A stretch of 36,334 nucleotides of DNA from Octopus bimaculoides (lineage: Eukaryota), in NCBI RefSeq assembly GCF_001194135.2, contig NC_068987.1:58593306-58629639 (forward strand), in the 5' to 3' direction. The notes below the pieces were generated by a model. The model made no database searches, was not told where the DNA came from, and was given only the letters and a program-made list of their open reading frames with translations. The position numbers were made by a program, and so were the translations under genes. Below are positions 3,109-36,300 of the stretch, one piece after another; position 1 is the stretch's first letter, and every line of letters starts with the position of its first letter.

Positions 3109-3190
3109 AAAGGATGAAAGGCAAAGTCAACCTCGGCGGAATTTGAACTCAAAACGTAAAGACAGACGAAATACCGCTAAGCATTTCGCC
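3109..3190 (-). mobile_element. SINE family A fragment
   Basis: AAGGATGAAAGGCAAAGTCAACCTCGGCGGAATTTGAACTCAAAACGTAAAGACAGACGAAATACCGCTAAGCATTTCGCC is near-identical to 728-808. Confidence 0.85.
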
Positions 3191-3844: not shown

Positions 3845-4204
3845 AATGGCTTAATTACAACTTAAATAAAGTTAGCAGCAAAATGCCATGCTTAGCAGAA
3901 CGCTCTCCAATAACTGTGGCAACTAAGAAAAATTACAGTATATTTTCATTACTCCCTGTTCAAAAGTTCAACAATCTTCGAAGAACATTTCGTTTTTTGC
4001 AGTTTGTTCAAAAATTACTTCCAAATTACTTTCTGCATTCTTTTGGTTGTTGTAAATCCAAGAAAAAATACCCTTAAAAAAATTCTCCTCAAAATGATTA
4101 ACAATATAACGTGCTTTGTCCGAATTGGACCAAAGCACAAGGCCAAGTTATTTATCTTTATGAATGTTATGTGGCAATTTCTGACAAACAAAAGCCTTTA
4201 GTTG

Positions 4205-4370
4205 AATATATCCATTCTGCAATAATGGTGATGCCTATATATGATGTACTTTCTGCATTAATGAATGATATATATAAATGTATGATATACTTTCTGCACT
4301 GTTGGAAATATAAATACATGACATACTTTCTACAATAACTGAGATAATTATATATGATTTACTTTCAGGA
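4205..4370. repeat. Degenerate minisatellite, period ~36-41 bp, core ATGA-NN-TACTTTCTGCA
   Basis: Core starts at 4247, 4288, 4324 and 4360, with a weaker copy at ~4211. Confidence 0.65.
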
Positions 4371-4637
4371 TTCTTTCCCACATTACCAAGGTGTTTCTCA
4401 TGACAGAATGAAAGTTTGCTGACGATTTTAACGCTCCTCGAGCATTCCCATAATTGTTTTCTTGTTCCTATTCACGCTTTTTTGATCAGCAATGCAATGT
4501 TGTGAAATACTAAAAATGCTATTGCAATGGAGAATTCTGTGCAGATCTCTGTTTTATTTTCTGATGCAATTATACCTTGACTCTCTTTGATAATGCTACC
4601 TCTATTTTCTAAGATACTTCTTTCTATTTCCTTCCAG

Positions 4638-4701
4638 TGAATCGATAATGTTTTGCCTTGAACGATTGACGTCTGGGTTAATATTCGTCTTTTGGGCATA
4701 T
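4638..4701 (+). CDS. Candidate 64-nt internal exon (xESIMFCLERLTSGLIFVFWAY)
   Basis: Strong pyrimidine tract ACTTCTTTCTATTTCCTTCCAG before 4638 and canonical GTAAGT after 4701; one frame is open. Competes with an antisense open frame (4235-4699). Confidence 0.25.
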
Positions 4702-4971
4702 GTAAGTGTTTACAGTTAATATCCGGCTACGCACTGATGCTATACACTGAATGTGAATGCATTCATACTAAATTGACATTACCGCACATGAACTAGACAT
4801 AAATAAAATGCGTCATTTTTATATTAAAAAAATTCTCTCATTCCACCTCATTTAATAATCTGCAAACAATCTAAAGTAGGAATCACATAAAAGTATATGC
4901 CAGTATGCTCCACTATAAATATGGGATGGTCTTGTGTGGATACCCATTTGAATGGCTTGTTCCTTACAAAC

Positions 4972-4998
4972 TCTCTCTCTCCCTCTTTCTCTCTTTCT

Positions 4999-5081
<83 letters not shown>

Positions 5082-5097
5082 TCTTTCTCTCTCTCAC
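4972..5097. repeat. (CT)n microsatellite
   Basis: Directly visible; generates the SLSL and RERE ORFs. Confidence 0.97.
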
Positions 5098-5116
5098 ACA
5101 CTAAGACGGGTTGGAC

Positions 5117-5698
5117 TATTTACATCCGCTGAAAATTTCAAATCTGGCACTAGACGGAGTACTTTTTTTGTTGATCTTACCATCACGGAACAGTGCACTA
5201 TATATATATAGGGAGAATTCACAAAAAAGAAAAACAAAAGACGAAGACAGGTTGGACTATATTTTAAAGACAATAAAATCATATGCAAGCAAACGCAGAA
5301 AATACCAAAGGGGAAAAGGAAAACAAAGAATTATTGCATAGCCTATTGTGTTTTGCATCGAATTTGTTTCATTTTTTAAAGCACCTAATTTCATCTGATT
5401 TTCAACATTTTTGTCCGAAAATTCCACATCTTTCTCTCTCTCCCTCCCTCCTCACTCTCTCTTTATACATACATACATTCATACATACATACATACATAC
5501 ATATATATATATTTTTTCATTTCCCGAGCGTTAAACTAATACATCTGTTTGTTGTCTGCACCACCTGTCTTCGTCTTTTGTTTTTCTTTTTTGTGAATTC
5601 TCCCTATATATATATAGTGCACTGTTCCGTGATGGTAAGATCAACAAAAAAAGTACTCCGTCTAGTGCCAGATTTGAAATTTTCAGCGGATGTAAATA
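5117..5698. repeat. Perfect 136-bp inverted repeat (5117-5252 / 5563-5698) with a 310-bp spacer
   Basis: Base-by-base comparison found no mismatch, including the T7/A7 run, the (TA)6 tract and the A6GA5CA4 runs. Confidence 0.95.
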
Positions 5699-5787
5699 TA
5701 TGGACAAGTTCCTGTTGGCGANNNNNNNNNNGGCACCAGATGTGTTATAAAAATGCTATTTGTGTTGTTTTCATCGCGTGAAACTAT

Positions 5788-6081
5788 TGAGTGGATTTGG
5801 TAGACGGAAACTCAAAGAAGCCCGTCGTATATATGTATATGTATATATATATGTGTGTGTGTGTGTTTGTGTGTCTGTGTTTGTCCCCCCAACATCGATT
5901 GACAACCGATGCTGGTGTGTTTACGTCCCCGTAACGTAGCGGTTCAGCAAAGGAGACCGACAAAATAAGTACTAGGCTTACAAATAATAAGTCCTGGGGT
6001 CGATTTGCACGACTAAAAGGCGGTGCTCCAGCATGGCCGCAGTCAAATGACTGAAACAAGTATAAGAGTAAAAGAGAGTAA
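5788..6081 (+). mobile_element. SINE family C, 5'-truncated (internal TA/TG microsatellite, CR1-type 3' tail)
   Basis: TGAGTGGATTTGGTAGACGGAAACT, then a microsatellite, then GGCGGTGCTCCAGCATGGCCGCAGTCAAATGACTGAAAC and an (AAGAGT)-like tail. An antisense fragment of the same family lies at 24780-24845. Family recognised from memory of octopus repeats. Confidence 0.75.
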
Positions 6082-6083
6082 GC

Positions 6084-7020
6084 GGGACACTGGTAGAATG
6101 TGTCATATAAAACATCTTTTANNNNNNNNNNNNNNNNNNNNNNNNNNNNNNNNNNNNNNNNNNNNNNNNNNNNNNNNNNNNNNNNNNNNNNNNNNNNNNN
6201 NNNNNNNNNNNNNNNNNNNNNNNNNNNNNNNNNNNNNNNNNNNNNNNNNNNNNNNNNNNNNNNNNNNNNNNNNNNNNNNNNNNNNNNNNNNNNNNNNNNN
6301 NNNNNNNNNNNNNNNNNNNNNNNNNNNNNNNNNNNNNNNNNNNNNNNNNNNNNNNNNNNNNNNNNNNNNNNNNNNNNNNNNNNNNNNNNNNNNNNNNNNN
6401 NNNNNNNNNNNNNNNNNNNNNNNNNNNNNNNNNNNNNNNNNNNNNNNNNNNNNNNNNNNNNNNNNNNNNNNNNNNNNNNNNNNNNNNNNNNNNNNNNNNN
6501 NNNNNNNNNNNNNNNNNNNNNNNNNNNNNNNNNNNNNNNNNNNNNNNNNNNNNNNNNNNNNNNNNNNNNNNNNNNNNNNNNNNNNNNNNNNNNNNNNNNN
6601 NNNNNNNNNNNNNNNNNNNNNNNNNNNNNNNNNNNNNNNNNNNNNNNNNNNNNNNNNNNNNNNNNNNNNNNNNNNNNNNNNNNNNNNNNNNNNNNNNNNN
6701 NNNNNNNNNNNNNNNNNNNNNNNNNNNNNNNNNNNNNNNNNNNNNNNGTTAACAGTCTAGTTAGGGTTAGGGTTAGGGTTAGGAGATTAATACGATATAC
6801 ACCGTTACAGCGCTAACTGTTTTCAACTGAATAGACGTGAGTGATTAGTAGAAATTATCGAAATAAGAATTTTTTACATGAAATAAATTCGAATACAAAA
6901 ATATTTTTCTGTTCTATAACACAAAATAGATAAGTATACGAAGTTTGAAAGTCTTTCCGTACCAAAAACACTACATAAAACATAAATGAAAACTGGCGCC
7001 CCCGTTTTAAAATAGATCCG
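6084..7020. mobile_element. Second member of the telomere-repeat-bearing inverted-repeat element family; interior lies in the N gap
   Basis: 6084-6121 is an exact 38/38 reverse complement of 21729-21766. ~6805-7000 resembles the reverse complement of 20985-21170. (TTAGGG)3TTAGG at 6761-6783. Right end TGGCGCC..AGATCC resembles 21798-21823. Confidence 0.7.
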
Positions 7021-7829: not shown

Positions 7830-9620
7830 GAACTGGCGGCCTCTTAGTAGATATCTATCGCAACTGTCAGCTGAACAGGAGAATTCCTAGCTCTGTGAGT
7901 TGAGGAGCGATGACACTACTAGGAAATGATCCAAACGAGGGATCAAATAGAACATTATAGGCCCATAACGCTGCTGAATGCAGATTTCAAAATTTTGGTG
8001 AAGGTATTAGCAAAGAGTTCGGCGCTTGTCGTCGAGGAACTGATTTGAGATGCGCAAACATGCGCCATCTCTACCAAGTCGATCTACGATAACCTCCATA
8101 TCTTAGACAGGGTAGGTAAAGAAGCTGGCATGGTTGGGGCTCTGATCAGTTTGGATCAATCAAAAGTTTTGGATAGGGTCGACCACTAATACTTGATGAC
8201 TGTTCTCACAGCGGCCGGTTTCTGTCCTGTTTGTGTACAGCAACACCTACGTGGTAATTTGATGAATGGTTACTTATCACAACACTTCAGCATCATGCGC
8301 GCGGTCGATCAAGGGTATTTTCTCTTGTCTCTTCTGTATGTAGAGCCACCACTATGGAAATTGGAGGCGTTGAGAGGCATCCCGCGCGATCTAGGACGTG
8401 GGAGAACCGTGTCGGCATATATGGACAGTGTCACCGTCATAATGTTGAACAGCAGGCACATAGAACTGGTCAGCACTGTAAGAAAAGAATACAAGGCAAT
8501 GACAGGAGTGAAAATTAACCAAGAAAAGTCTGTGGACTTGCAGCTCGGCACCTGGAGAGAGAGGTCGATACCGTCCAATAACGTCGTGGGACACCGGCCG
8601 GAGGGACCGGTTAAGTTGTTTGGGGTCTGGTTGGTCCGGACCTCCTGGTGGAGAAGAACTTGGACGAGGTAACGAGCAGGGTGGCCAATCTCACTCAGAA
8701 ATGGGCCAAGAGAAAGCTGTTTCTGGAAGTTGTGTTGAGGTGGCGAATGCATATACATTGCCTCCGTTATACATTACCGCCTGATCATCGTGCCTTGCTT
8801 CACTTTACGTCTAATCAAACTGGAGCGCATACTCATTCGCTATCTGTAGAAGGGATGCGTTCCACAGGTCAGGCACTCCATTTCTTGTCAACATGCTCTT
8901 AATGGAGGGTTGGGGATGCCGTAGATGCTGATGTGCAGACATGCGCTACGGTCACGACATCTTCAGCGCTTCCTTGACGGTGTGCAGGTGCGGTCACCGT
9001 TTGTCATACAGTATTTTCCGCAGCTCGTCTCTGAACTGCAGTCTTGGATCAAGCGTAGACCGAGGCAGTGCACTTGACAGCCGGAGTCTCGACAGACGAT
9101 CTCACTCCTCTGTCAGTTGGGCAATGCGGTGGGTGGAAGTTCCACTTTGGCATTCTATAGAGGGTTTGTGGTGGGCAAGTACGACGACGTGCTCGTGGAG
9201 ACTCTGGAAGTCTACAAGAATGAACTGGCTGATCTGTGTTGAATGGCTTTCGGGCCAAGGACCATGGATAATTTCCAAAATTATCCGCAGTGCTACTGGA
9301 AGGCATTGCCGGTTCGGTATAAACTCTACAGGCATGGAAATTGCTGTCAGTTGGGCTTGCCGTAATGCGCACAGAGCAACGAAATTGTTCTTGCACTCTC
9401 TCGTCCAGTACCGGACAATTGCTGACTCGTGGGTTTGTGTCGAACACTTGTGTGTAAAACGGATCCGACTATCAGCTGAGTCCATTGTCAAGATCGTCCT
9501 GTCGCCTTCCTTTGGCCGGGAAAGGTAGACGATGTTTGTTTGTCTGACGGCTTTAGCGAAAGTCGGTGTGTTGAGGACCAGATTGAAAGGGCTGAAGACA
9601 GATACTTTACTCTTTAGCCA
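7830..9620 (+). mobile_element. L1/Tx1-clade non-LTR retrotransposon copy 2, 5'-truncated and decayed ORF2
   Basis: Colinear with 1723-3090 (e.g. AGGCCCATAACGCTGCTGAA and CAAACATGCGC shared). The catalytic YADD is mutated to YMDS (8418-8429). An eroded C-terminal zinc finger (C..HSLVQY) lies at ~9357-9410. Ends approximate. Confidence 0.9.
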
Positions 9621-9732: not shown

Positions 9733-10439
9733 NNNNNNNNNNNNNNNNNNNNNNNNNNNNNNNNNNNNNNNNNNNNNNNNNNNNNNNNNNNNNNNNNNNN
9801 NNNNNNNNNNNNNNNNNNNNNNNNNNNNNNNNNNNNNNNNNNNNNNNNNNNNNNNNNNNNNNNNNNNNNNNNNNNNNNNNNNNNNNNNNNNNNNNNNNNN
9901 NNNNNNNNNNNNNNNNNNNNNNNNNNNNNNNNNNNNNNNNNNNNNNNNNNNNNNNNNNNNNNNNNNNNNNNNNNNNNNNNNNNNNNNNNNNNNNNNNNNN
10001 NNNNNNNNNNNNNNNNNNNNNNNNNNNNNNNNNNNNNNNNNNNNNNNNNNNNNNNNNNNNNNNNNNNNNNNNNNNNNNNNNNNNNNNNNNNNNNNNNNNN
10101 NNNNNNNNNNNNNNNNNNNNNNNNNNNNNNNNNNNNNNNNNNNNNNNNNNNNNNNNNNNNNNNNNNNNNNNNNNNNNNNNNNNNNNNNNNNNNNNNNNNN
10201 NNNNNNNNNNNNNNNNNNNNNNNNNNNNNNNNNNNNNNNNNNNNNNNNNNNNNNNNNNNNNNNNNNNNNNNNNNNNNNNNNNNNNNNNNNNNNNNNNNNN
10301 NNNNNNNNNNNNNNNNNNNNNNNNNNNNNNNNNNNNNNNNNNNNNNNNNNATATATATATATATATATATATATAAGTGTGTGTGTTCTTTATATTTGTA
10401 AAGGCTGAGCGGAAGAAACTGATGTTTCTAGGATATTAT

Positions 10440-10879: not shown

Positions 10880-11050
10880 CAAAATACTTAGCGGTATTTA
10901 GCCCTTCTTTACGTTCTGAGTTCAAATTCCGCAGAGACTTTTCCTTTCATCCTTTCGAGGTCAATAAAATAAGTAGCAGTTGAACACTGGAGTTGATGTA
11001 ATCGACTTAGCCCCACCCGCGAAATTGCTGGCCTTCTGCCAAAATTTCAA
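10880..11050 (+). mobile_element. SINE family A, 5'-truncated
   Basis: B-box GAGTTCAAATTCC at 10918-10930, then CCTTTCATCCTTTCGAGGTCAATAAAATAAGTAGCAG and a 3' end GGCCTTCTGCCAAAATTTCAAA. Confidence 0.85.
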
Positions 11051-13582: not shown

Positions 13583-13712
13583 TACCAGTGAAATATGCCC
13601 CATGTATTACATGTGATGTTCACCAGTGAAATATGTGAAACACAGGACATGAACAGTGAAATTACATGTGATGTTCACAGGTGAAATATGTGATGCACAG
13701 GACATGCACAGG
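13583..13712. repeat. Tandem repeat, period ~55 bp (about 2.3 copies)
   Basis: ATTACATGTGATGTTCAC..GTGAAATATGTGA..CACAGGACATG starts at 13606 and 13661. Confidence 0.8.
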
Positions 13713-13908: not shown

Positions 13909-14497
13909 ATATATATATATATATNNNNNNNNNNNNNNNNNNNNNNNNNNNNNNNNNNNNNNNNNNNNNNNNNNNNNNNNNNNNNNNNNNNNNNNNNNNN
14001 NNNNNNNNNNNNNNNNNNNNNNNNNNNNNNNNNNNNNNNNNNNNNNNNNNNNNNNNNNNNNNNNNNNNNNNNNNNNNNNNNNNNNNNNNNNNNNNNNNNN
14101 NNNNNNNNNNNNNNNNNNNNNNNNNNNNNNNNNNNNNNNNNNNNNNNNNNNNNNNNNNNNNNNNNNNNNNNNNNNNNNNNNNNNNNNNNNNNNNNNNNNN
14201 NNNNNNNNNNNNNNNNNNNNNNNNNNNNNNNNNNNNNNNNNNNNNNNNNNNNNNNNNNNNNNNNNNNNNNNNNNNNNNNNNNNNNNNNNNNNNNNNNNNN
14301 NNNNNNNNNNNNNNNNNNNNNNNNNNNNNNNNNNNNNNNNNNNNNNNNNNNNNNNNNNNNNNNNNNNNNNNNNNNNNNNNNNNNNNNNNNNNNNNNNNNN
14401 NNNNNNNNNNNNNNNNNNNNNNNNNNNNNNNNNNNNNNNNNNNNNNNNNNNNNNNNNNNNNNNNNNNNNNNNNNNNNNNNNNNNNTGTGTGTGTGTG

Positions 14498-19872: not shown

Positions 19873-20965
19873 AAAACAAAAATACTAAATTATTGATAAT
19901 GCAGACTGAGTTATATTATAATCGATAATAACCAAGTTATGAACCTACTCCAGGACAAGACAAATGTACAGTTATCATCAGTAAAGTTAATTCCACTAAT
20001 AGAAACTGAACTCAGTACAGCAAGCAGTGAAGTCAGTTATCAAGTATACCCAGCTACCACTGACAGTATGGTTAGTTATAATTTACACCTGCAGTGTATC
20101 TATCTCAGAGACAACTGAATTGAATAATTGGGAGCAAGATATAATGAATATGAATTTAATCATAGCTCTTTGGTGGTTATTTCAGGAACATGGACCACAT
20201 TTGTCTTCAGGCATGGTAGATCCTCCATCGATTTTGACGATAGAAATACAGTCATTTAGTTTAGTTGCAGCCTGGATGTTGAACGAACAACAATGTTCAC
20301 TTTGAAGTAGTACTGTTTGGATTTTCCTTTCTATCATGGAGAGTTGCAGTTTAAACAGCATTAATAGTTATCACAACTTATGTGTTGAAAAATTATTCTG
20401 GTTTTTATAACCAGACTGAAGATTTGTTTGATTTGACAGCACTCACAATATATCTGAAAAAAATTTTAGTTTGGTTATTATAACAAATTCGTAAACTTGG
20501 CGAAGTAGAAATCCTCAGCAGAAAAATTTACCCATGAATACGGTGTTGAATATAATTTCACTATGGAAACAAAAAGTTAAGGGCGATTTAGCTATTGTTT
20601 TTAGCACATCTCCACCATTGGGATCCTTTTTAAAATGTTTTTCTATTACTCAAACGAAAAATAAATGACTCAAAAATTTTTTTCCTCAAAATTTTATCTT
20701 GTGAATTTTCTGAAATTCCTCTCCCCATCTCCTTGTTCGTTGGCACAAATTTTTGTTTTCATATTCATTTAATACACATTTTTTACACCCATAACACCTT
20801 TATTTATTATTTTTTTTTCTGTTATGGTAGCCGGATGTTAAAGTAAACACGAACTATTTGAGTAATATTTACTTTAAGGTAAACATCAACCATAAATTTT
20901 TGCTAAATTGGTGAGTTTCCGACACTGGAATATTTCTTTTCGAAATATTCCCTAAAATAAAATTT

Positions 20966-21824
20966 AGGATATTTCTGATTTGGCGGGCGCCACTTTTTAT
21001 TTATGTTTTATTTAGTGTGTTTTCTACCGAAACACTTTAAAACTTCATATACTTGTATATTTTGTCTTATAGAACAGAAAAAAATTTTATATCCAAAGTT
21101 ATTTCATGTTAAAAGTTGTCGTATTTTGGTAATTTCAACCAATCACTGACGTCTATTGAGGTGAAAACAATTACTGCTGTGGAATGTAAACAATACATTC
21201 TAGCAGTGTATGGGATCTTTTCCCTTGAATAAAATTAGTGCCTTTGTTTGTCAACAACAACTATCGGTGGTACTGTTATTTATGACATCGTTCGTGCGTT
21301 TGTACTGGTTTTAGGTTTAGGGTTTTAGGTTTAGGGTTCGGGTATTAGAGCTAGGGTTAGGGTTAGGGTTTTAAGGTTAGGGTTAGAGTTTTAGGGTTAG
21401 GGTTAGGGTTATGAGTATTTTTGCCAAACCCTAACCCTAACTCTAAAACCCGAGCCCTAACCCTAAAACCCTAAAGCTAAAACCAGTACAAACGCACGAA
21501 CGATGTCAAAAATAACAGTACCGCCGATAGTTGTTATTGACAAACAACGGCACTAATTTTATTCAAGGGAAAATATCCCATTACACCGCACAACGTGTTG
21601 TTTACATTCTACAGCAGTAATTGTTTTCACCTCAATAGACGTCAGTGATTGGTTAAAATTACAGAAATACCACAATTTTAACACGAAATAACTTTAAAAA
21701 GATAAATTTTTCTCAATAACACTAAGAGTAAAAGATGTTTTATATGACACATTCTACCAGTGTCCCAAGTTTGAAAGTGTTTCGTTTAGAAAACAAGTGG
21801 CGCCTGCCAAATCAGAAAGATCCC
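20966..21824. mobile_element. Foldback/MITE-like element with ~340-bp inverted arms and a central (TTAGGG)n-(CCCTAA)n core
   Basis: Terminal 29 nt match 26/29 (20966-20994 vs reverse complement of 21796-21824) and the arms align throughout. TTAGGG-variant array at 21308-21410, 15-nt spacer, CCCTAA-variant array at 21426-21484. Flanks are ATTT and AATT. Confidence 0.9.
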
Positions 21825-22890
21825 AATTGTCTTTTTCTCCAATGAATGTAATAAAATCCAGTCCTTTCGGAATGACTTTGCACCAAGTAACTTCCAATTC
21901 ATAATAACAAGAATTGAATTAGGGATTTCTATTCATAACAGCCCCCTACTTAGCTTATACACGCACACACACACGTATACCCACTATCTTTCATATACAT
22001 GTACATACATCATTCACTTTCACTTCTCTTTCATTTTCTCCACTCGCTTCAAAGCGAATGTCGCCTTCCACACGTCAATGAAACAAAAGTAGGAAATATA
22101 AGAAATATGAAAAATTTTTACGGAAATTAACGAACAATCCAGCTGTTTAAATATGACAGCTAAAGGCGAAAGATTGCCCGTAACCTTATATACATATATG
22201 CATAAACACACATACATATAGCTACTATATAAATGGGAATGTATGTATATTTATGCGTGTATNNNNNNNNNNNNNNNNNNNNNNNNNNNNNNNNNNNNNN
22301 NNNNNNNNNNNNNNNNNNNNNNNNNNNNNNNNNNNNNNNNNNNNNNNNNNNNNNNNNNNNNNNNNNNNNNNNNNNNNNNNNNNNNNNNNNNNNNNNNNNN
22401 NNNNNNNNNNNNNNNNNNNNNNNNNNNNNNNNNNNNNNNNNNNNNNNNNNNNNNNNNNNNNNNNNNNNNNNNNNNNNNNNNNNNNNNNNNNNNNNNNNNN
22501 NNNNNNNNNNNNNNNNNNNNNNNNNNNNNNNNNNNNNNNNNNNNNNNNNNNNNNNNNNNNNNNNNNNNNNNNNNNNNNNNNNNNNNNNNNNNNNNNNNNN
22601 NNNNNNNNNNNNNNNNNNNNNNNNNNNNNNNNNNNNNNNNNNNNNNNNNNNNNNNNNNNNNNNNNNNNNNNNNNNNNNNNNNNNNNNNNNNNNNNNNNNN
22701 NNNNNNNNNNNNNNNNNNNNNNNNNNNNNNNNNNNNNNNNNNNNNNNNNNNNNNNNNNNNNNNNNNNNNNNNNNNNNNNNNNNNNNNNNNNNNNNNNNNN
22801 NNNNNNNNNNNNNNNNNNNNNNNNNNNNNNNNNNNNNNNNNNNNNNNNNNNNNNNNNNNNNNNNNNNNNNNNNNNNNNNNNNNNNNNNNN

Positions 22891-23665: not shown

Positions 23666-24059
23666 AATTGTAAACTTCAATTTGTGGTCTTCTTTTTATA
23701 TCTATGACACACCTGGAACCATGCAAAACAATGCATTGCTCCAAGAGATGGATAGAGAATTTTCAAAAATTGATGAAACTGAATAAAAGAAGTTTATTGT
23801 TTGTTTATATATAACGTGCAGTTGTATGATCAAATATTGTTATACACAAAATGAAAGTGAAACAAGCTGATATGTAGATATCTAATAGCAATGTAATCTT
23901 AGTATTACTTGCGTTGAAAAGAAAAATACCAAACATTTACTGTTATTAAAGCAATGAAATATTAATACTTAGTAGATTGCTAGCAAAGTATGCAAAAGTT
24001 GAAGATATGAAATTTACAGCAGACAATTATAAGATGAAATATTGGTTTCAAATTTTGAC

Positions 24060-24489
24060 ACATGGTCAGTAATTTGGGGGAAGAGGGTAAGCTGATTACA
24101 TTGACTTCATTACTCAACTGATACTGTATTTTATTGACCCTGAAAGGATGAATGGCAAGGTTAACCATGGCAGAATTTGAACTTTCAACTTAATGAAGGA
24201 CAAAATACTGCTAAGCATTTTGCCCGGCATGTCAACAATTCTTTTCTACTCAAGGCACAAGGCCTAAAATTTTTGGGGAAGGGGCCAGTCGATTAAATCG
24301 ACTCCCAGTACTCATCTGGTACTTAATTTATCAACCCCAGAAGGATGAAAGGCAAAGTTAGCCTTGACAGAATTTGAACTCAGAACATAGAGACAGACGA
24401 AATATTGATAAGCATTTCGCCCAGTGTGCTAACATTTCTGCCAGCTCACCACCTTGGCATGTTAATGATTCTGTCAGCTCACTGCCTTA
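24060..24489 (-). mobile_element. Older SINE family A copy (24060-24242 and 24456-24489) split by a younger copy
   Basis: The consensus order resumes after the insert. Duplicated target GGCATGTCAACAATTCT (24226-24242) / GGCATGTTAATGATTCT (24456-24472), 14/17 identical. Confidence 0.8.
24243..24455 (-). mobile_element. SINE family A, full length, nested
   Basis: Aligns along its whole length with 629-844. Confidence 0.9.
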
Positions 24490-26049: not shown

Positions 26050-26180
26050 TATGCTGGGCAAAATGCTTAGTAGTATTTTGTCCATCTTTATGTTTGTCTT
26101 TACCAGTGAACCACTAGGGTTGATGTAATCGATTACTCCCCTCCCCTCAAATTTCCGGACTTGTGCCTTTAGTAGAAAGG
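26050..26180 (+). mobile_element. SINE family A, internally deleted
   Basis: GGGCAAAATGCTTAG..TTTTGTCCATCTTTATGTT jumps to TACCAG..GGGTTGATGTAATCGA..CTTGTGCCTTTAGTAGAAAG; the B-box region is missing. Confidence 0.75.
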
Positions 26181-26200
26181 ATTATTAAGCCAATGTGTTT

Positions 26201-26405
26201 AAGGCAGTGAGCTGGCAGAATCATTAGCGCACCAGGCAAAATGTTTAGTGACATTTTGTCCATCTTTATGTTCTGAGTTCAAATTCTGCCGAGGTCGACT
26301 TTGCCTTTCATGATTTTGGTGTTGTACTAGCTGAGTATTGGGAGTTGATGTCATCGACTTACTCCTTCCATCAAACATGCTAGCCCTGTGCCAAAATTTG
26401 AAACC
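26201..26405 (+). mobile_element. SINE family A, full length, with exact 16-bp TSD
   Basis: A-box TGGCAGAATCA at 26213, B-box GAGTTCAAATTC at 26275. ATTATTAAGCCAATGT occurs at 26181-26196 and 26406-26421. Confidence 0.92.
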
Positions 26406-26611
26406 ATTATTAAGCCAATGTTTGAAACAAATCAACATGGAAGTTTAATGGTAAGTTTTAACTGAGATTACTATAAAATAGAAAATTTGTACCATTGACC
26501 AGGAATGGACTTGGGCAGGTTGGCATCATAAGAGTTGGTATAACAAGTGAAGACTTGTGAAACCCATCCCTGTTCAATGATCCCCGTGGCAAAGATTCAA
26601 TCAAATAATAA

Positions 26612-26827
26612 TTGTTTCAACTTTTGGCACAAAGCCAGCAAATTTAGGGGAGTGGGCTAGTCACTTACATTGACCCCAGTGCTTGACTGGTACTTATTTC
26701 ATCGACCCTGAAAGGATGAAAGGCAAAGTTGACCTCAGTGGAATTTGAATTCAGAATGTAAAACTGGAAGAAATGCTGCTGAGCATATTATCCAGTGTGC
26801 TAACAACTCTGCAAGCTCACTGCCTTA
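26612..26827 (-). mobile_element. SINE family A, full length
   Basis: Aligns with the other copies (CCCTGAAAGGATGAAAGGCAAAGTTGACCTCAGTGGAATTTGAATTCAGAA..AGCTCACTGCCTTA). Confidence 0.9.
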
Positions 26828-28296: not shown

Positions 28297-29413
28297 TTTG
28301 TTTATTTTTATGTCTTTTGATTTATTATTAGTGTTGCTTAATATGTTTTGCTAAAATTGCTGTTTCTTTTTAGATATCATCAGAAAAAGGTAATTAAAAT
28401 TCATTAAAATGACAGATGTATCGGACTTTCAAACAGGTCAAATTATTGGTGCTCGTATGGCAGGCACTAGCGTAATGGAAACAGCCAAAATGTTTATTGT
28501 ATCAAAAAGTACTGTCTTGAAAGTAATGACAGCCTTTGAGAAAGAGGGAAAAACCTCCTCGTCGAAACAAAACTCCGGAAGAAAACCAAAACTTTCAAAT
28601 AGGGACCGTCAAGCTCTTATGCGAATTGTTCACAAAAGGATCACAAAAGTACAGCTCCCAAAATTACTGCAAAGCTTAATGACCACCTCGAGAACCCAGT
28701 TTCCACAAAAACTGTTCACCAGGAGCTACACAAAACTGGATTTCATGGGAGGACTGCAATCAGAAAACCACTACTTTCAAAGACAAACGTTGTAAAGCGT
28801 TTAGAGTGGAGTAAAAACCTACAGAATTGATCCCTAGAGCACTGGAAGAATGTTATTTTCTCGGACGAGTCATCCTTTACCTTATTTCTGACTACTGGCC
28901 GAGTATACATGTGGAAACAGCCAAAGAAGCATTTGACCCAGACTGCCTTTTAACTGTTAAACATAGAGGCATATCTGTGATGATCTGGGGTGGGGGCTGT
29001 ATCTTGGAAATCTGCCGATTCAATGGTTTCGCTTCATGGCAGAAATAATAGTCAAGACTATTTAAGCATTTTATCTGATCAAATTCATCCTATGGTTGCA
29101 GAACTGTTTCTGGAGGGAAACACAATCTTTCAGGATGATAATGCACCAATTCACATAGCTAAAGTTGTTACTGAATGGTACGAAGAACATGCTAGAAAAA
29201 AAGTAAGGAGTCGATATTCTCCACTATCATCACTACAAGAACTGGAGACTGTTTTAGAATGAACAAAAATTCCTTTTGAAACAATTCAAACTTTGTATGA
29301 GTCCATACCTCGTAGAATTCAAGCTGTAATTACTGCCAAAGGCAGTCCTACCCCATATCAAAATAAATTTGTTTGAAACTTTAAGGTGTTTCCATTATTT
29401 TGTCCAACCTCTG
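28297..29413 (+). mobile_element. Tc1-family (Tc1/mariner) DNA transposon with defective transposase
   Basis: Paired-like HTH N-terminus (ORF 28409), frameshift at ~28637, stop at ~28828, FSDES (D at 28864), FQDDNAPIH (29128-29154). The SPDLN-IE segment is deleted at ~29190. C-terminus SIPRRIQAVITAKG. Right TIR GGTGTTTCCATTATTTTGTCCAACCTCTG followed by TA. The left TIR would lie in the 28280-28296 gap. Confidence 0.93.
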
Positions 29414-30442
29414 TATATACATATATANNNNNNNNNNNNNNNNNNNNNNNNNNNNNNNNNNNNNNNNNNNNNNNNNNNNNNNNNNNNNNNNNNNNNNNNN
29501 NNNNNNNNNNNNNNNNNNNNNNNNNNNNNNNNNNNNNNNNNNNNNNNNNNNNNNNNNNNNNNNNNNNNNNNNNNNNNNNNNNNNNNNNNNNNNNNNNNNN
29601 NNNNNNNNNNNNNNNNNNNNNNNNNNNNNNNNNNNNNNNNNNNNNNNNNNNNNNNNNNNNNNNNNNNNNNNNNNNNNNNNNNNNNNNNNNNNNNNNNNNN
29701 NNNNNNNNNNNNNNNNNNNNNNNNNNNNNTATATATATTTCGTTTTTGTATTTGGTTTGCAAGATTCTTTATGTGAATTCGTGTGTTGAAGCATATTTTG
29801 TTGTGTTTGAGGAGAGTCATTCTGTTTTAATGCCTTATTAATTAACACACTCATCAATCCAATGTCCACTCATTTAGATTCAGTAATCATTTGGCTACCA
29901 AATAAACTTTATTGTCATTTACATATTTGCATTACAAAAATTTAACATTATAATCTTTCTATCATAAATGACAATTTGTATGACTACGACAACGATGATA
30001 TCGACATCATATTTTCTATATGAGTGTATATGTGTCTGTGAGTGTGCATGTGTTTGCGCATTCGTTACATACATTAGGCCAATGACTGAGAAGTATATGT
30101 GTGAGTGTATGTGAGGGTGTGTGTGTCAGTATACATTTTTGTGTTGACACACACATACACACACACACACATTTAAAGACAGAGAGACACACAGAGGGAC
30201 AGAGATAGGCCTGAAGTGTGTGTGAATGTATGTCTGTGTGTGTCTCTCTTAGTATATATATGTGAGTATATGCCAGAGTGTGTGTGTGTGTGCAAGTGTA
30301 TGTCTGATAATTTTTATGTTAGGCCTCAGACAATTAAACACACACATCTACACATACATTTACATATGTGTATGAGTGTGTATATGTCTGTGAGTGTGTG
30401 TGTGTTTCTGCATTCATTATGTCTATAGTAAACTATAGTAAA

Positions 30443-31710: not shown

Positions 31711-33018
31711 CAAGCTATGTACAGGGATGCTGTCAGTTAGTTAAATGTCAGCAATGAGTATAGCAAGGAAATTAATGTACAAGTAGGAATTCACCAAGGA
31801 TTGGTTCTCAGCACCCTCTTGTTTATCATAGTCCTCCAGACCATAACAGAGGAATTTAAAACTGTCTACACTTGGGAGCTCCTCTGTGCTAACGATCTTG
31901 TTCCTATTGCTGAATCACTACCAGAACTAGAGAAGAAATTTCAGGTATAAAAACAAGGTCTGGAATCAAAGGGCCTTAGCATAAAAAGACAAATCACTGA
32001 CCCCTCCAGGACAATGGTCCTGCTCAATATGTAGAAAAGGTATTGGTAGGAAATCCATATGGTGTACCCAGTGCAAGCTATGGGCACATAAGAGGTGCAG
32101 TGGTATCACAAGAAGATTAACTGAGAAAGTAGTCTTTGTGTGTGGCAGATTGCAAGTACAATAAACCTTTGGAATGTGCAGAAAATGGACTCCCTCCTTA
32201 GAAGTAATAGATAATTTTCGTTCCCTAGGTGATCAGGTTAGCAGGGGAGGAGGAAGCTCTGAAAGCATAGTTTCTAGAATAAGAACAGGCTGGGCAAAGT
32301 TCAGAGAGCTGCTACCTTTGTTGGTAACAAAAGACCTTTCCCTCAGGATGATGCCTGTGTATAAAAAGCTATGCTACATAATGGTGAGACAGGGGCTGTG
32401 ATTTCTGAGAGATTTGTGAAGGCTTGAAGGAAATGAAGACAGCATGCTTTGCTGAATGTGTAATGTTAGTGTGCATGTACGACAGAGTGTAAATGACTTA
32501 AGAGAAAAACTGGGTACAAGCAGCATCAGATGTAGAATGCAATAGACAAGACTGTGCCCGTATGGTCACATGATACATGTAGATGTGAGCAGCTGCTTTA
32601 AAGAGTATTGATCTCTAATTGTGGAAGGAACATGTGGAAAGGGTAGACCCAAGAAGATGACAAGGGACTGAGACTTGTGGTGATTTGCTGTGCTTGAGAA
32701 AACATGTCAAGCTAAGTAAAATCATGGCCATCCATACTTACAGGCACGTCCCTCTGTCAGCCAAAAGGTCCTTGTCCTATAGGCTTGCAGGTGCTGGTGT
32801 CACGTAAAAACACCTGTGCTACTGCCAAGTAAGAAGCATCTGTAAAAAAGTGCCTGTACTGGTGCAACATAAAAAGCACCTGTGTCAGTGCCTTGCAGAA
32901 AGCACCCATGCTGGGGCCACATATAAAGCACCTGTACTTGTGCCACATATAAGGCACCCATGCTGGTATCACATAAAAAGCACTCAGTACATTCTGTAAA
33001 GTGCTGGGTGTTAGGTTG
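31711..33018 (+). mobile_element. RTE-clade LINE, 5'-truncated and decayed: RT, PHD-type finger, thumb, 3'UTR
   Basis: QAMYRDAVS..VGIHQGLVLSTLLFIIVLQTITEEFK..WELLCANDL (YADD mutated to CAND, 31885-31896)..GLESKGL; FRSLGDQV..RIRTGWAKFRELLPLL; GTCGKGRPKK. The 3'UTR ends AGTACATTCTGTAAAGTGCTGGGTGTTAGG. Confidence 0.92.
32791..32985 (+). repeat. 26-bp hairpin-unit minisatellite in the RTE 3'UTR (7 full units and 1 partial)
   Basis: Units resembling GTGCTGGTGCCACATAAAAAGCACCT start at 32791, 32816, 32856, 32882, 32908, 32934 and 32960. Confidence 0.85.
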
Positions 33019-34427: not shown

Positions 34428-34699
34428 AACACTACAAAGCTTATACAAAGCTTTATATATTAAACATATTCTTCCTATTATTATCAAAGAATGTATATAT
34501 GTATTTTAATACATAAACTGTTTTTTAAACATTTTTCTATTATTAACAAAGAATATATATATGTATTTATATATATGTATTTTAATACTTAAACTGTTTT
34601 TAACATTTTCTTATTATTATCAGTGAATGTATATATGTATTTTAATACTTTTGTGACAACCCGTACTTAACACTACAAAGCTTATATAAAGCTTTATAT
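34428..34699. repeat. Three ~55-75-bp tandem units bracketed by a 31-bp direct repeat
   Basis: AACACTACAAAGCTTATAYAAAGCTTTATAT at 34428-34458 and 34669-34699 (1 mismatch). The internal units share TATTATT..GAAT.TATATATGTATTTTAATAC. Confidence 0.8.
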
Positions 34700-35193
34700 T
34701 TTACTTTTGACAATCTTTTTCTAAAAAAGTGAAACCGGTAAAGTGAATAAACATCTTTAAAATTGCATTTTTAAACCTTCTTTCATATATATTTCCACTC
34801 GTGCAGTATCTTACAACTTTACTTTGTTATATATNNNNNNNNNNNNNNNNNNNNNNNNNNNNNNNNNNNNNNNNNNNNNNNNNNNNNNNNNNNNNNNNNN
34901 NNNNNNNNNNNNNNNNNNNNNNNNNNNNNNNNNNNNNNNNNNNNNNNNNNNNNNNNNNNNNNNNNNNNNNNNNNNNNNNNNNNNNNNNNNNNNNNNNNNN
35001 NNNNNNNNNNNNNNNNNNNNNNNNNNNNNNNNNNNNNNNNNNNNNNNNNNNNNNNNNNNNNNNNNNNNNNNNNNNNNNNNNNNNNNNNNNNNNNNNNNNN
35101 NNNNNNNNNNNNNNNNNNNNNNNNNNNNNNNNNNNNNNNNNNNNNNNNNNNNNNNNNNNNNNNNNNNNNNNNNNNTATATATATATATATATA

Positions 35194-35292: not shown

Positions 35293-36300
35293 CTAGCAGA
35301 GATACCCAGCATTGCTTGGGATTAAAATGGCATAGTTTGTATAGGATATATTACAGTTATGTTGAAACAGGTGATATGGGAAAGTGCAGCATTGATAACA
35401 AAATATTTGTGGATCAAAGGCTGGGCTAATTCGACTAAGCAACATACCATGCATCCGTTTGGGGTGTTTCAGGCCGTAACACATCATGGAAAATTTGAGG
35501 TGGGGTTATGTGATTTTTGAACACACCAAAAAGCTGTCAATGGATATACTCTCTTTTGCAGCAGTCAGCGCTGTGTCTAACACAACCTATCATCTGAAAT
35601 TTTAACACCTCCTTTGGGTTTGTTGTCCTACATTACTCATAAAGTAAATTTGGAGGAACTGTGGTTGTTCATTTGTGAGTAACAGGAAACCAATGAGGTG
35701 ATAGACTTGCCCTTGAACTTTGACGTTGGTGAAAATTCATGTTTATCTATCTTCTTAGACACACCAAACAATGCCATTTGAAATGCAGAGTTGTATTGTC
35801 TGATATTGTTCAGAAAATCCTTTGACTGGATGGACATGCCTTCTAGAAGATCCATAAGCGGTTGAGAAGGAGCTAGTAGTGCTGGTAATGTTACCTGACC
35901 GCCTGAGCAGCACATACCATTTGTTTCATTTGAAAATTTCAAAGCTCTACAGAAACGACAATTTGGACAGAGTTATCACTTTTATAAGAATGGGATGGAT
36001 CATATCTGAAAACAGCTTCAGAAGTTGTGAAGAACGAATTTGTACGTAGTCTGTTTCTGAGAGCTGTTCTACTGGACCTCTGTCTAATCATTAAAACATT
36101 GATTTAATGATACAGCATTAAGTGCTGCAACATGCATTTGCTGATCTTGAGAAAATCTCATCTCTCTTCAGACTCTTGCCTTCGGTTTTCTACAATCCTC
36201 CTTGGTTTATGCTTGTTTATGGAGAGATTACGTCTTTTCTGTGTTTCTCCCACTCATTCCATAAAAATTTATTTGAAGACAACAGAAATTGAAAGAAGAG
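35293..36300 (-). mobile_element. Internally deleted Helitron on the minus strand with intact 3' end
   Basis: Minus translation AVFRYDP..CRFCRALKFSNETNGMCCSGGQVTLP..FLNNIRQYNSAFQM..VKVQGQVYHLIG..PQFLQIYF, then eroded HG-YVA-LSR helicase motifs (~35430-35530). 3' hairpin at 35304-35320 and CTAG at 35293-35296 followed by T. The 5' limit is approximate. Confidence 0.88.

Follow-up and report, generated by a model that had tools for sequence, protein, structure and literature searches.

A candidate MITE-like foldback repeat with a head-to-head telomeric core in the Octopus bimaculoides genome

The telomere repeat of molluscs is TTAGGG. In ciliates, telomeric repeats form part of the TBE and Tec elements, which bear inverted repeats. 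Telomeric repeats have also been reported in a transposon-like element of Tetrahymena called Tel-1 (Cherry and Blackburn 1985, as cited in PMC2831315). In several animal genomes, interstitial telomeric tracts (ITSs) are arranged head to head, and the known set includes the fusion at human 2q13 and loci in mouse lemur, Xenopus, and horse (PMC8537989, PMC7215372, PMC6410037). The head-to-head ITSs at internal breaks in mouse lemur and Xenopus are attributed to 3' ends that were extended by telomerase and then rejoined (PMC8537989). At a horse locus, an inverted duplication of the flanking DNA accompanies the ITS insertion (PMC7215372). The polarity (TTAGGG)n-(CCCTAA)n, which an initial annotation of the octopus locus described here had taken as that of an end-to-end telomere fusion, is present at this locus but is not diagnostic of such a fusion, as it also occurs at repaired internal breaks (PMC8537989, PMC7215372).

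The octopus locus is a non-coding foldback of 859 nt (20966-21824, copy 1) located in a 36,334-nt stretch of Octopus bimaculoides DNA, which was analysed as a whole and is referred to as the window. Along copy 1, arm A is followed by a G-strand telomere-like array (G array), a spacer, a C-strand array (C array), and arm B. How does it compare with the systems described above? It resembles ITSs formed by fusion or break repair in its head-to-head polarity, its degenerate units, and its internal chromosomal position. However, those ITSs are single loci that result from one event each, whereas the octopus core lies in a bounded unit present at a minimum of two sites (at least two). Likewise, it resembles Tel-1, TBE, and Tec in that telomere repeats travel with a repeated, inverted-repeat element and make internal tracts. 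The ciliate elements have their telomeric repeats at the outer ends, whereas those of the octopus element are central and face each other, and its outer ends are non-telomeric.

The likeness to MITEs and foldback elements is structural. The octopus element has no coding capacity, is rich in AT, and is shorter than 1 kb; a defined TIR bounds it, its central segment is not derived from the arms, and it is present in more than one copy. It differs from them in that no TSD was found at the complete copy and in that its centre consists of mirrored telomere-repeat arrays. The arms of Drosophila FB are composed of tandem subrepeats; those of the octopus element are not built in this way. Elements of the Sola superfamily generate a 4-bp TSD, for which Sola1 prefers AWWT, and Sola2 has GRG termini. 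A Sola-like origin had been raised for the octopus element. The 4-bp AT-rich flanks could be read as a degenerate TSD, and one terminus begins with GGG. However, the two flanks differ (ATTT versus AATT), the other termini begin with AGG and CGG so that GRG fits only 1 of 3 termini, and no Sola-type transposase was found in or near the element.

Penelope-like elements (PLEs; Athena/Coprina) share with the octopus element inverted adjacent partial copies, trouble in short-read assembly, short telomeric stretches, and a presence in cephalopods (PMC8557442). On the other hand, the octopus element is devoid of a reverse transcriptase, a GIY-YIG domain, a hammerhead ribozyme, and independent truncation points; instead, it has mirrored arrays and a TIR. 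Full-text literature searches turned up no description of such a core in any family, from cephalopods or elsewhere, although this absence is not proof. In structure, the octopus element is MITE-like, a foldback repeat whose central mirrored telomeric core has no described counterpart in the literature searched. Helitrons of C. elegans with telomere-like repeats were considered as a precedent and were set aside, as the literature examined gave no confirmation.

Architecture of the complete copy

The initial annotation described two inverted arms of ~340 bp that meet at a TTAGGG-variant array, a spacer, and a CCCTAA-variant array. Repeat finding and gapped alignment reproduced both the arms (343 and 342 nt) and the arrays between them to within 1-2 nt (Table 1). 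The arms make up ~80% of the element, which is AT-rich and <1 kb, and the central part is not arm sequence. In a gapped alignment, arm A and arm B show 378 matches and 48 mismatches, which corresponds to 89% identity over aligned bases, and the same alignment contains two indels of ~22 nt. Identity is not uniform along the arms. The terminal 28 nt are 90% identical, the outer subterminal part drops to 79-84%, and the inner ~200 nt reach 90-94%. Because the arms are 11% divergent and carry indels, the palindrome is neither an assembly artefact nor the product of a chimeric read. The foldback of copy 1 is beyond chance. As a single strand, the 859 nt fold into one long hairpin of -310 kcal/mol, compared with -82±5 kcal/mol for 20 shuffled sequences (z = -46). 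Outside 20966 and 21824 no significant inverted homology was detected, an equal score being reached in 66-145 of 500 shuffles.

Table 1. Coordinates of the features of copy 1 and copy 2 in the window
Feature	Position	Strand	Remarks
Copy 2 arm B fragment (outer to inner on + strand)	6084..6121	.	38/38 identical to reverse complement of 21729-21766
Assembly gap in copy 2, 626 N	6122-6747
Copy 2 internal (GTTAGG)4 telomere run, perfect	6760..6783	+	23 nt from arm A; just inside gap
Copy 2 arm A, reverse orientation, arm positions 1-215	6807..7019	.	ends ...AGATCC / GAGT
Copy 2 terminus, GGATCTATTTTAAAACGGGGGCGCCAG	ends copy 2 at 7019		related to copy 1 termini
Arm A, copy 1 (left arm, outer to inner)	20966..21308	.	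inverted partner of 21483-21824
Left TIR, (A)GGATATTTCTGATTTGGCGGGCGCCAC	20966..20993	.	25/28 match to reverse complement of 21797-21824
A-specific ~22-nt segment	about 20995-21017		in arm A of copy 1; also present in the A arm of copy 2
Most conserved arm block, CCAATCACTGACGTCTATTGAGGTGAAAACA (CCAAT + TGACGTC palindrome)	21139..21169	.	mirror at 21622-21652
G-strand telomere-like array, 103 nt	21309..21411	+	16 units, 8 perfect TTAGGG; Tandem Repeats Finder period 6
Central spacer, 12-15 nt	21412..21425	.	TGAGTATTTTTGCC; also written TGAGTATTTTTG(CCA)
C-strand telomere-like array, 57 nt	21426..21482	+	mirror of 21309-21367
Arm B, copy 1 (right arm, inner to outer; includes right TIR)	21483..21824	.	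repeat finding and gapped alignment
B-specific ~22-nt segment	about 21713-21733		in arm B of copy 1; partly recurs in copy 2 at 6084-6121
Right TIR of copy 1	21797-21824		terminus reads G-GGATCTTTCTGATTTGGCAGGCGCCAC

The most conserved block of the arms, CCAATCACTGACGTCTATTGAGGTGAAAACA, is identical in both arms of copy 1 and differs at 4 positions in copy 2 (6818-6848). A functional role for this block is something we can only infer.

The G array begins next to arm A with the units TTTTAGG TTTAGGG TTTTAGG TTTAGGG TTCGGG TATTAGAG CTAGGG TTAGGG TTAGGG TTTTAAGG and continues with TTAGGG TTAGAG TTTTAGGG TTAGGG TTAGGG TTA. The C array, read as its reverse complement, consists of TTTTAG CTTTAGGG TTTTAGGG TTAGGG CTCGGG TTTTAGAG TTAGGG TTAGGG TTT. 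In this parse, variant-rich units adjoin the arm and canonical TTAGGG units are located further inward. The order of variant units had been described as mirrored between the two arrays, and this proved correct, since an ungapped comparison of the reverse complement of the C array with the 60 nt of the G array nearest the arm shows agreement at 54 of 60 positions. The match is in register with the arms, indicating that the arrays were copied together with the arms and not added separately, as the initial annotation had reasoned.

The two arrays are unequal in length. The G array is 46 nt longer than the C array because it contains 2.2 copies of a 46-nt higher-order unit (Tandem Repeats Finder, period 46, 85% match). 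As a result, the symmetry axis of the foldback is located inside the G array and not in the spacer, and the unpaired loop spans 56 nt (21368-21423). The presence of the higher-order unit also indicates that the tract is evolving by tandem duplication (slippage, as in a minisatellite) and not by telomerase. The arrays had been credited with a potential to form G-quadruplexes. Only a single four-run motif of the canonical kind, with no loop exceeding 7 nt, is present, on the minus strand at 21449-21471; the G array would need an 11-nt loop.

The termini were described in the initial annotation as RGGAT with flanks of ATTT and AATT. Three termini are available in the window: A-GGATATTTCTGATTTGGCGGGCGCCAC, G-GGATCTTTCTGATTTGGCAGGCGCCAC, and C-GGATCTATTTTAAAACGGGGGCGCCAG. 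GGAT is conserved among them, but the leading R is not, because the third terminus reads C-GGAT. Thus, the conserved end is GGAT and not RGGAT, and the consensus of the ~28-bp TIR is GGATMT...GGCRGGCGCCAC. The flanking bases are as first described, but they are not identical on the two sides. A 4-bp TSD was therefore not found at copy 1, an old copy and the only one with both ends, where ATTT and AATT match at 3 of 4 positions; by estimate and not by computation, such a match is expected by chance about 1 time in 5 in this AT-rich DNA. Longer frames at copy 1 gave no TSD either. An 8-bp frame showed no match by eye, and a 10-bp frame matched at 6 of 10 positions by hand count, which we estimate to be within chance for AT-rich DNA. 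The missing TSD weakens membership among MITEs without excluding it, given that it concerns a single old copy. A search for an empty site, made with the joined flanks of copy 1 and with the flank of copy 2, yielded no paralogue in the window or in the fetched loci.

A second copy and the unit that was copied

A second copy of the element was found at 6084-7019, 14 kb away and in reverse orientation, by BLAST against the window, pairwise alignments, and an nhmmer profile of the arms. Its arm A aligns to 20985-21180 with 84% identity and only 3 gap columns (nhmmer E = 9.5e-63), and the homology stops exactly at the terminus ...ATCC. The two copies have the GGAT/ATCC terminus in common on one side, and the flanks beyond it are unrelated. 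The unrelated flanks show that the copies did not arise by segmental duplication. The second copy points to a repeat family with dispersed members and speaks against a scar of chromosome fusion. The initial annotation had stated that arms which are single-copy or subtelomere-specific and lack TSDs would point to a fusion relic or a local inversion. The arms are not single-copy; the second copy has the same terminus, both arm types, and an internal TTAGGG run, and it supports the proposal that the element is a repeated, non-coding foldback rather than a one-off relic.

Copy 2 is incomplete. Its centre is gapped, the outer 65 nt of arm B are absent, and arm A is present without its inner ~130 nt. 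What is left of arm B is truncated on its left side by a SINE-like repeat and cut on its right side by the run of N. The internal run consists of four tandem TTAGGG-type units, (TTAGGG)4. The segment 6760-6788 (+ strand) matches the end of the G array and the start of the spacer of copy 1 at 27 of 29 positions, a match that is only a weak hint because most of it is plain telomere repeat.

How does the core of copy 2 relate to that of copy 1? With arm A as the reference, the run of copy 2 shows its C strand and that of copy 1 its G strand. This opposite polarity, together with the missing inner arm, means that an additional deletion or an inversion of the core is needed. Two readings fit. In one of them, the core was inverted with respect to the outer arms by recombination between the nearly identical inner arms, and a deletion followed. 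In the other, a deletion brought arm A next to the far array. A perfect match of 38/38 in the arm B fragment is surprising beside the 84% of arm A and may have arisen in assembly, at the end of a contig.

Further evidence on the relationship between the copies comes from the differences between arms. Over arm positions 1-217, the A arms of the two copies agree with each other against arm B of copy 1 at 22 sites and in two ~22-nt indels, and arm A of copy 2 agrees with arm B of copy 1 against arm A of copy 1 at 8 sites. The 38-nt fragment of copy 2 contains part of the B-specific segment. Each copy pairs one A arm with one B arm, and the two face inward. Since the differences between A and B are common to both copies, the arm types are older than the split between copy 1 and copy 2. 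Since both types are present in both copies, the whole A-core-B unit was copied. Neither a pair of independent tail-to-tail insertions nor a pair of independent fusions would yield this A/B pairing. The outer parts of the arms are more diverged between A and B than the inner parts.

The telomere repeats belong to the repeat family. The two arrays of copy 1 and the run of copy 2 account for 16 of the 25 TTAGGG/CCCTAA hexamers in the window within only 199 nt, and tandem TTAGGG occurs at just two loci in the 36 kb, both of them inside copies of the element.

Origin and spread of the element

We consider it slightly more probable than its converse that copy 1 is a member of a dispersed, non-coding, MITE-like foldback family of ~0.86-1.0 kb in the Octopus genome with a head-to-head interstitial telomeric core. 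The term DNA transposon is applied to it provisionally, from the 28-nt TIR and the lack of retroelement marks. In this model, the whole unit would have spread most simply by means of a trans-acting transposase able to recognise the TIR, and the telomere-like core would be passive cargo that formed once in an ancestor, probably by break repair or palindrome formation. Two routes to the core can be envisaged. A break at the centre of a fragile palindrome, which is the expected site of such a break, could have exposed two 3' ends that telomerase extended before they were rejoined. Alternatively, the core could have come from a sequence that already had a short, variant-rich telomeric tract at its end and was copied in a fold-back or sister-type manner, and copying of this kind would yield the mirrored variants directly. 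Precedents at single loci are documented for both routes (PMC8537989, PMC7215372). The mirror symmetry may since have been kept by copying along with the arms or by arm-to-arm conversion, while the core probably drifted by point mutation and by the 46-nt tandem duplication.

Did a transposase move the unit by its ends? One alternative is a dispersed composite in which the arm is a repeat unit associated with subtelomeres or ITSs and which owes its dispersal to duplication, ectopic recombination, extrachromosomal circles, or carriage within a larger element. It would account for the lack of a TSD at the sole complete copy and for the array layout, with variant units near the arm and canonical TTAGGG inward as at a subtelomere-telomere junction; that only two copies are seen, 14 kb apart, also agrees with it. 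We nevertheless regard it as unlikely, because a sharp GGAT/ATCC terminus is placed beside unrelated flanks in both copies, the 28-nt TIR is 90% conserved against 79-84% in the adjacent subterminal part, and the surroundings of the copies have no larger unit in common. The most attractive alternative is offered by PLEs such as Athena, because of their inverted partial copies, broken assemblies, short telomeric stretches, and occurrence in Octopus. According to it, the arms are the ends of a Penelope-like or telomere-associated retroelement, or of a SINE-like unit with a telomere-like tail, and the head-to-head arrangement reflects inverted partial copies made on insertion. Adjacent PLE copies are typically inverted and 5'-truncated and disrupt short-read assembly, endonuclease-deficient PLEs bear short stretches of telomeric repeats, and Octopus hosts PLEs (PMC8557442). 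The assembly gap within copy 2 is in line with these properties. However, the element shows no reverse-transcriptase ORF, no hammerhead ribozyme at E ≤ 5, and no tRNA-like head. Its junctions and the variants in its arrays mirror each other base for base (54/60), unlike independent 5' truncations, and the pairing of an A arm with a B arm in both copies and the 28-nt TIR likewise argue against a retroelement origin, which we judge to be quite improbable.

The observation of a second copy bears most heavily on the idea that copy 1 is an immobile relic at a single locus, left by a telomere-telomere (sister-chromatid) fusion or by an inverted duplication at a healed break. The (TTAGGG)n-(CCCTAA)n polarity, the unequal arrays, the short filler, and the mirrored variants are all as expected for two fused copies of one short telomere, and head-to-head ITSs are known to arise by fusion or at repaired breaks. 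But a second locus has the same arms, the same terminus, and an internal telomere run in different flanks, and the differences between arms A and B are common to both loci. In addition, the inverted homology ends at defined points 343 nt from the arrays and does not extend outward as subtelomeres would. The relic is thus disfavoured by copy 2, and we hold it to be very unlikely. Similarly doubtful to us is a locus transcribed into hairpin RNA (as an endo-siRNA or miRNA-like precursor, or as a TERRA-like transcript), for whose role the inverted arms and the CCAAT/TGACGTC block would be maintained. In its favour are the high stability of the hairpin, a promoter-like block that all three arms conserve, and matches to miRNA precursors below threshold, the best being MIR8643. 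Those Rfam matches, however, are all far below threshold and of a generic hairpin type, and arms that are 89% identical and differ by indels are nothing unusual in an inverted repeat that is ageing.

If the MITE-like foldback family is real, its main present consequence is probably structural, namely a hairpin- or cruciform-prone, hard-to-assemble site that would scatter short ITSs throughout the genome. Long near-palindromes with G-rich centres are fragile and difficult to assemble, and copy 2 sits on a gap. A dispersed family of near-palindromes would be relevant to assembly gaps, rearrangement hot spots, and searches for sites of new telomere formation. If abundant, the family would explain scattered short interstitial telomeric tracts in the octopus genome without chromosome fusions, and it would call for caution before head-to-head telomere repeats are taken for scars of fusion. 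The family would also add a case in which telomeric repeats are positioned in the middle of a bounded repeat and not at its ends as in ciliates.

If the element broke between the arrays, the G strands would run 5'-3' toward both of the resulting ends, a geometry that the initial annotation had correctly pointed out. The family might then act as a mobile source of preformed telomere seeds in the correct orientation, and telomerase or telomere-binding proteins could cap the ends at its broken, hairpin- or cruciform-prone centre. We find this extremely improbable. No evidence emerged that such breaks happen or matter, and cruciform cleavage and the recruitment of TRF/POT1-type proteins, both raised in the initial annotation, are likewise conjectural. 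The telomere arrays are short, degenerate, and drifting by tandem duplication. Were the seed reading true, insertions would mark in advance where chromosomes split or where their ends heal, and they could have fed the reshuffling of cephalopod karyotypes.

Searches for coding capacity, structured RNA, and further copies

The longest ORF in the element is 48 aa, and no ORF of the element matched Pfam. A protein-level search with the ORFs of the arms gave 0 matches, and none of 20 window ORFs was present in a protein collection when looked up exactly. No Rfam family reached threshold in the element. At relaxed thresholds, generic hairpin matches to miRNA precursors appeared, the best of which, MIR8643, scored 56 bits against a gathering score of 135. 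The Rfam scan of 20800-22000 gave no hammerhead ribozyme at E ≤ 5; the string nearest to one, CTGACGT, is without the essential A9 as judged by eye. ARAGORN found no tRNA in the element.

No transposase or autonomous partner with the same TIR is present anywhere in the 36-kb window. The only transposase remnant in the window (28297-29427) is Tc1-like, and it was rejected as a TIR partner because it does not have the TIR of the element. Exact-pattern scans for the conserved arm motifs in JGI metagenome contigs, IMG/VR viral contigs, and the GTDB genome set gave 0 matches, and 60 kb of other fetched DNA, 20 kb of it from O. bimaculoides, contained no copy of the element. Two of the fetched loci, each of 20 kb and from ENA assembly ERZ21867824, have only a Tc1-like element in common with the window and are not Octopus-like. 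The window itself has a GC content of 33% and contains many microsatellites and N gaps as well as LINE and SINE-like repeats, whose relatives in O. bimaculoides DNA place the window in Octopus or a close relative. These LINE and SINE-like repeats match a 20-kb segment of O. bimaculoides CM046616.1 (GCA_001194135.2) at 66-87% nucleotide identity.

The conserved arm block and the telomere-repeat hairpin

The stretch best conserved among the three foldback arms, CCAATCACTGACGTCTATTGAGGTGAAAACA, consists of a CCAAT box adjoining a TGACGTC palindrome that resembles a CRE. This block points inward and is located ~140 nt away from the central telomere-like arrays of copy 1, the foldback element at 20966-21824. 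If the block drove transcription, the product would be a TERRA-like hairpin RNA containing UUAGGG. A role in binding a transposase is just as plausible.

The top sub-threshold Rfam match in the region of the arrays (21310-21481, minus strand) was to MIR8643, a plant miRNA precursor family in Rfam. It scored 56 bits, whereas the family's gathering score is 135, and does not represent a homologue. The match may come from a likeness to a hairpin made of telomere-like repeats.

The missing core and truncated arm of copy 2

In copy 2, the second foldback copy, which is reverse-oriented and incomplete, an N gap coincides exactly with the expected position of the core, as expected from a palindromic, telomere-repeat-rich center. 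The 38 nt preceding the gap (6084-6121) are 100% identical to copy 1, whereas identity drops to 84% in the other arm. This disparity may be an assembly effect at a contig end. Arm B is truncated at arm position 66 by an adjoining SINE-like repeat, a part of which (6017-6076) showed an 88% match to positions 10-69 of L003, a 20-kb O. bimaculoides comparison locus on CM046616.1. Nowhere in 4000-6083 was there a trace of the outer 65 nt that this arm lacks.

Features of the foldback arms and the surrounding window
Feature	Position	Description
Most conserved arm block	21139-21169, 21622-21652, 6818-6848	CCAATCACTGACGTCTATTGAGGTGAAAACA; conserved in all three arms
N gap within copy 2	6122-6747	Between 6084-6121 and 6748-6806
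SINE-like repeat	5890-6083	Adjoins and truncates copy 2 arm B
LINE, two decayed copies of one family	1717-2817, 7834-9405	Reverse-transcriptase fragments with YADD-type motif
Tc1/mariner-like transposase remnant	28297-29427	Weak HTH_7/HTH_29 match; DDNAPIH-type motif
~200-nt interspersed repeat	625-817, 3109-3190, 10882-11040, 24038-24446, 26113-26411, 26604-26756	One repeat, at least 8 copies/fragments
Four large N gaps	9733-10350, 13925-14485, 22263-22890, 34835-35175	Microsatellite-bordered
Minisatellite-like tandem duplication	13606-13711	Period 55 nt, ~2 copies
Minisatellite-like tandem duplication	32899-32983	Period 26 nt, ~3.3 copies
Minisatellite-like tandem duplication	34494-34642	Period 74 nt, ~2 copies
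101-aa ORF	35637-35942	Minus strand; contains …NETNGMCCSGGQVTLPAL…

Neighboring repeats and assembly gaps

Both LINE copies share 67-72% nucleotide identity with the O. bimaculoides LOC106873687 locus (L003:9605-11154). Likewise, all copies and fragments of the ~200-nt repeat, which is probably a SINE, match L003:3789-4005 at 72-84%. The Tc1/mariner-like remnant is interrupted by an N gap, and copies with 76-78% nucleotide identity to it are carried by long contigs of the ENA metagenome assembly ERZ21867824. No repeat other than this element was common to the window and those contigs; therefore, ERZ21867824 holds DNA of a different animal.

The 101-aa ORF may resemble the N-terminal region of Helitron-like proteins; a Pfam search with it returned no match. 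The three minisatellite-like tandem duplications are short. The microsatellites at the four large N gaps are dinucleotide or tetranucleotide repeats (AC/AT, TATA/TG, TC, and TA), a pattern typical of a short-read scaffold. This pattern is consistent with the O. bimaculoides assembly, where L003 likewise contains N gaps.
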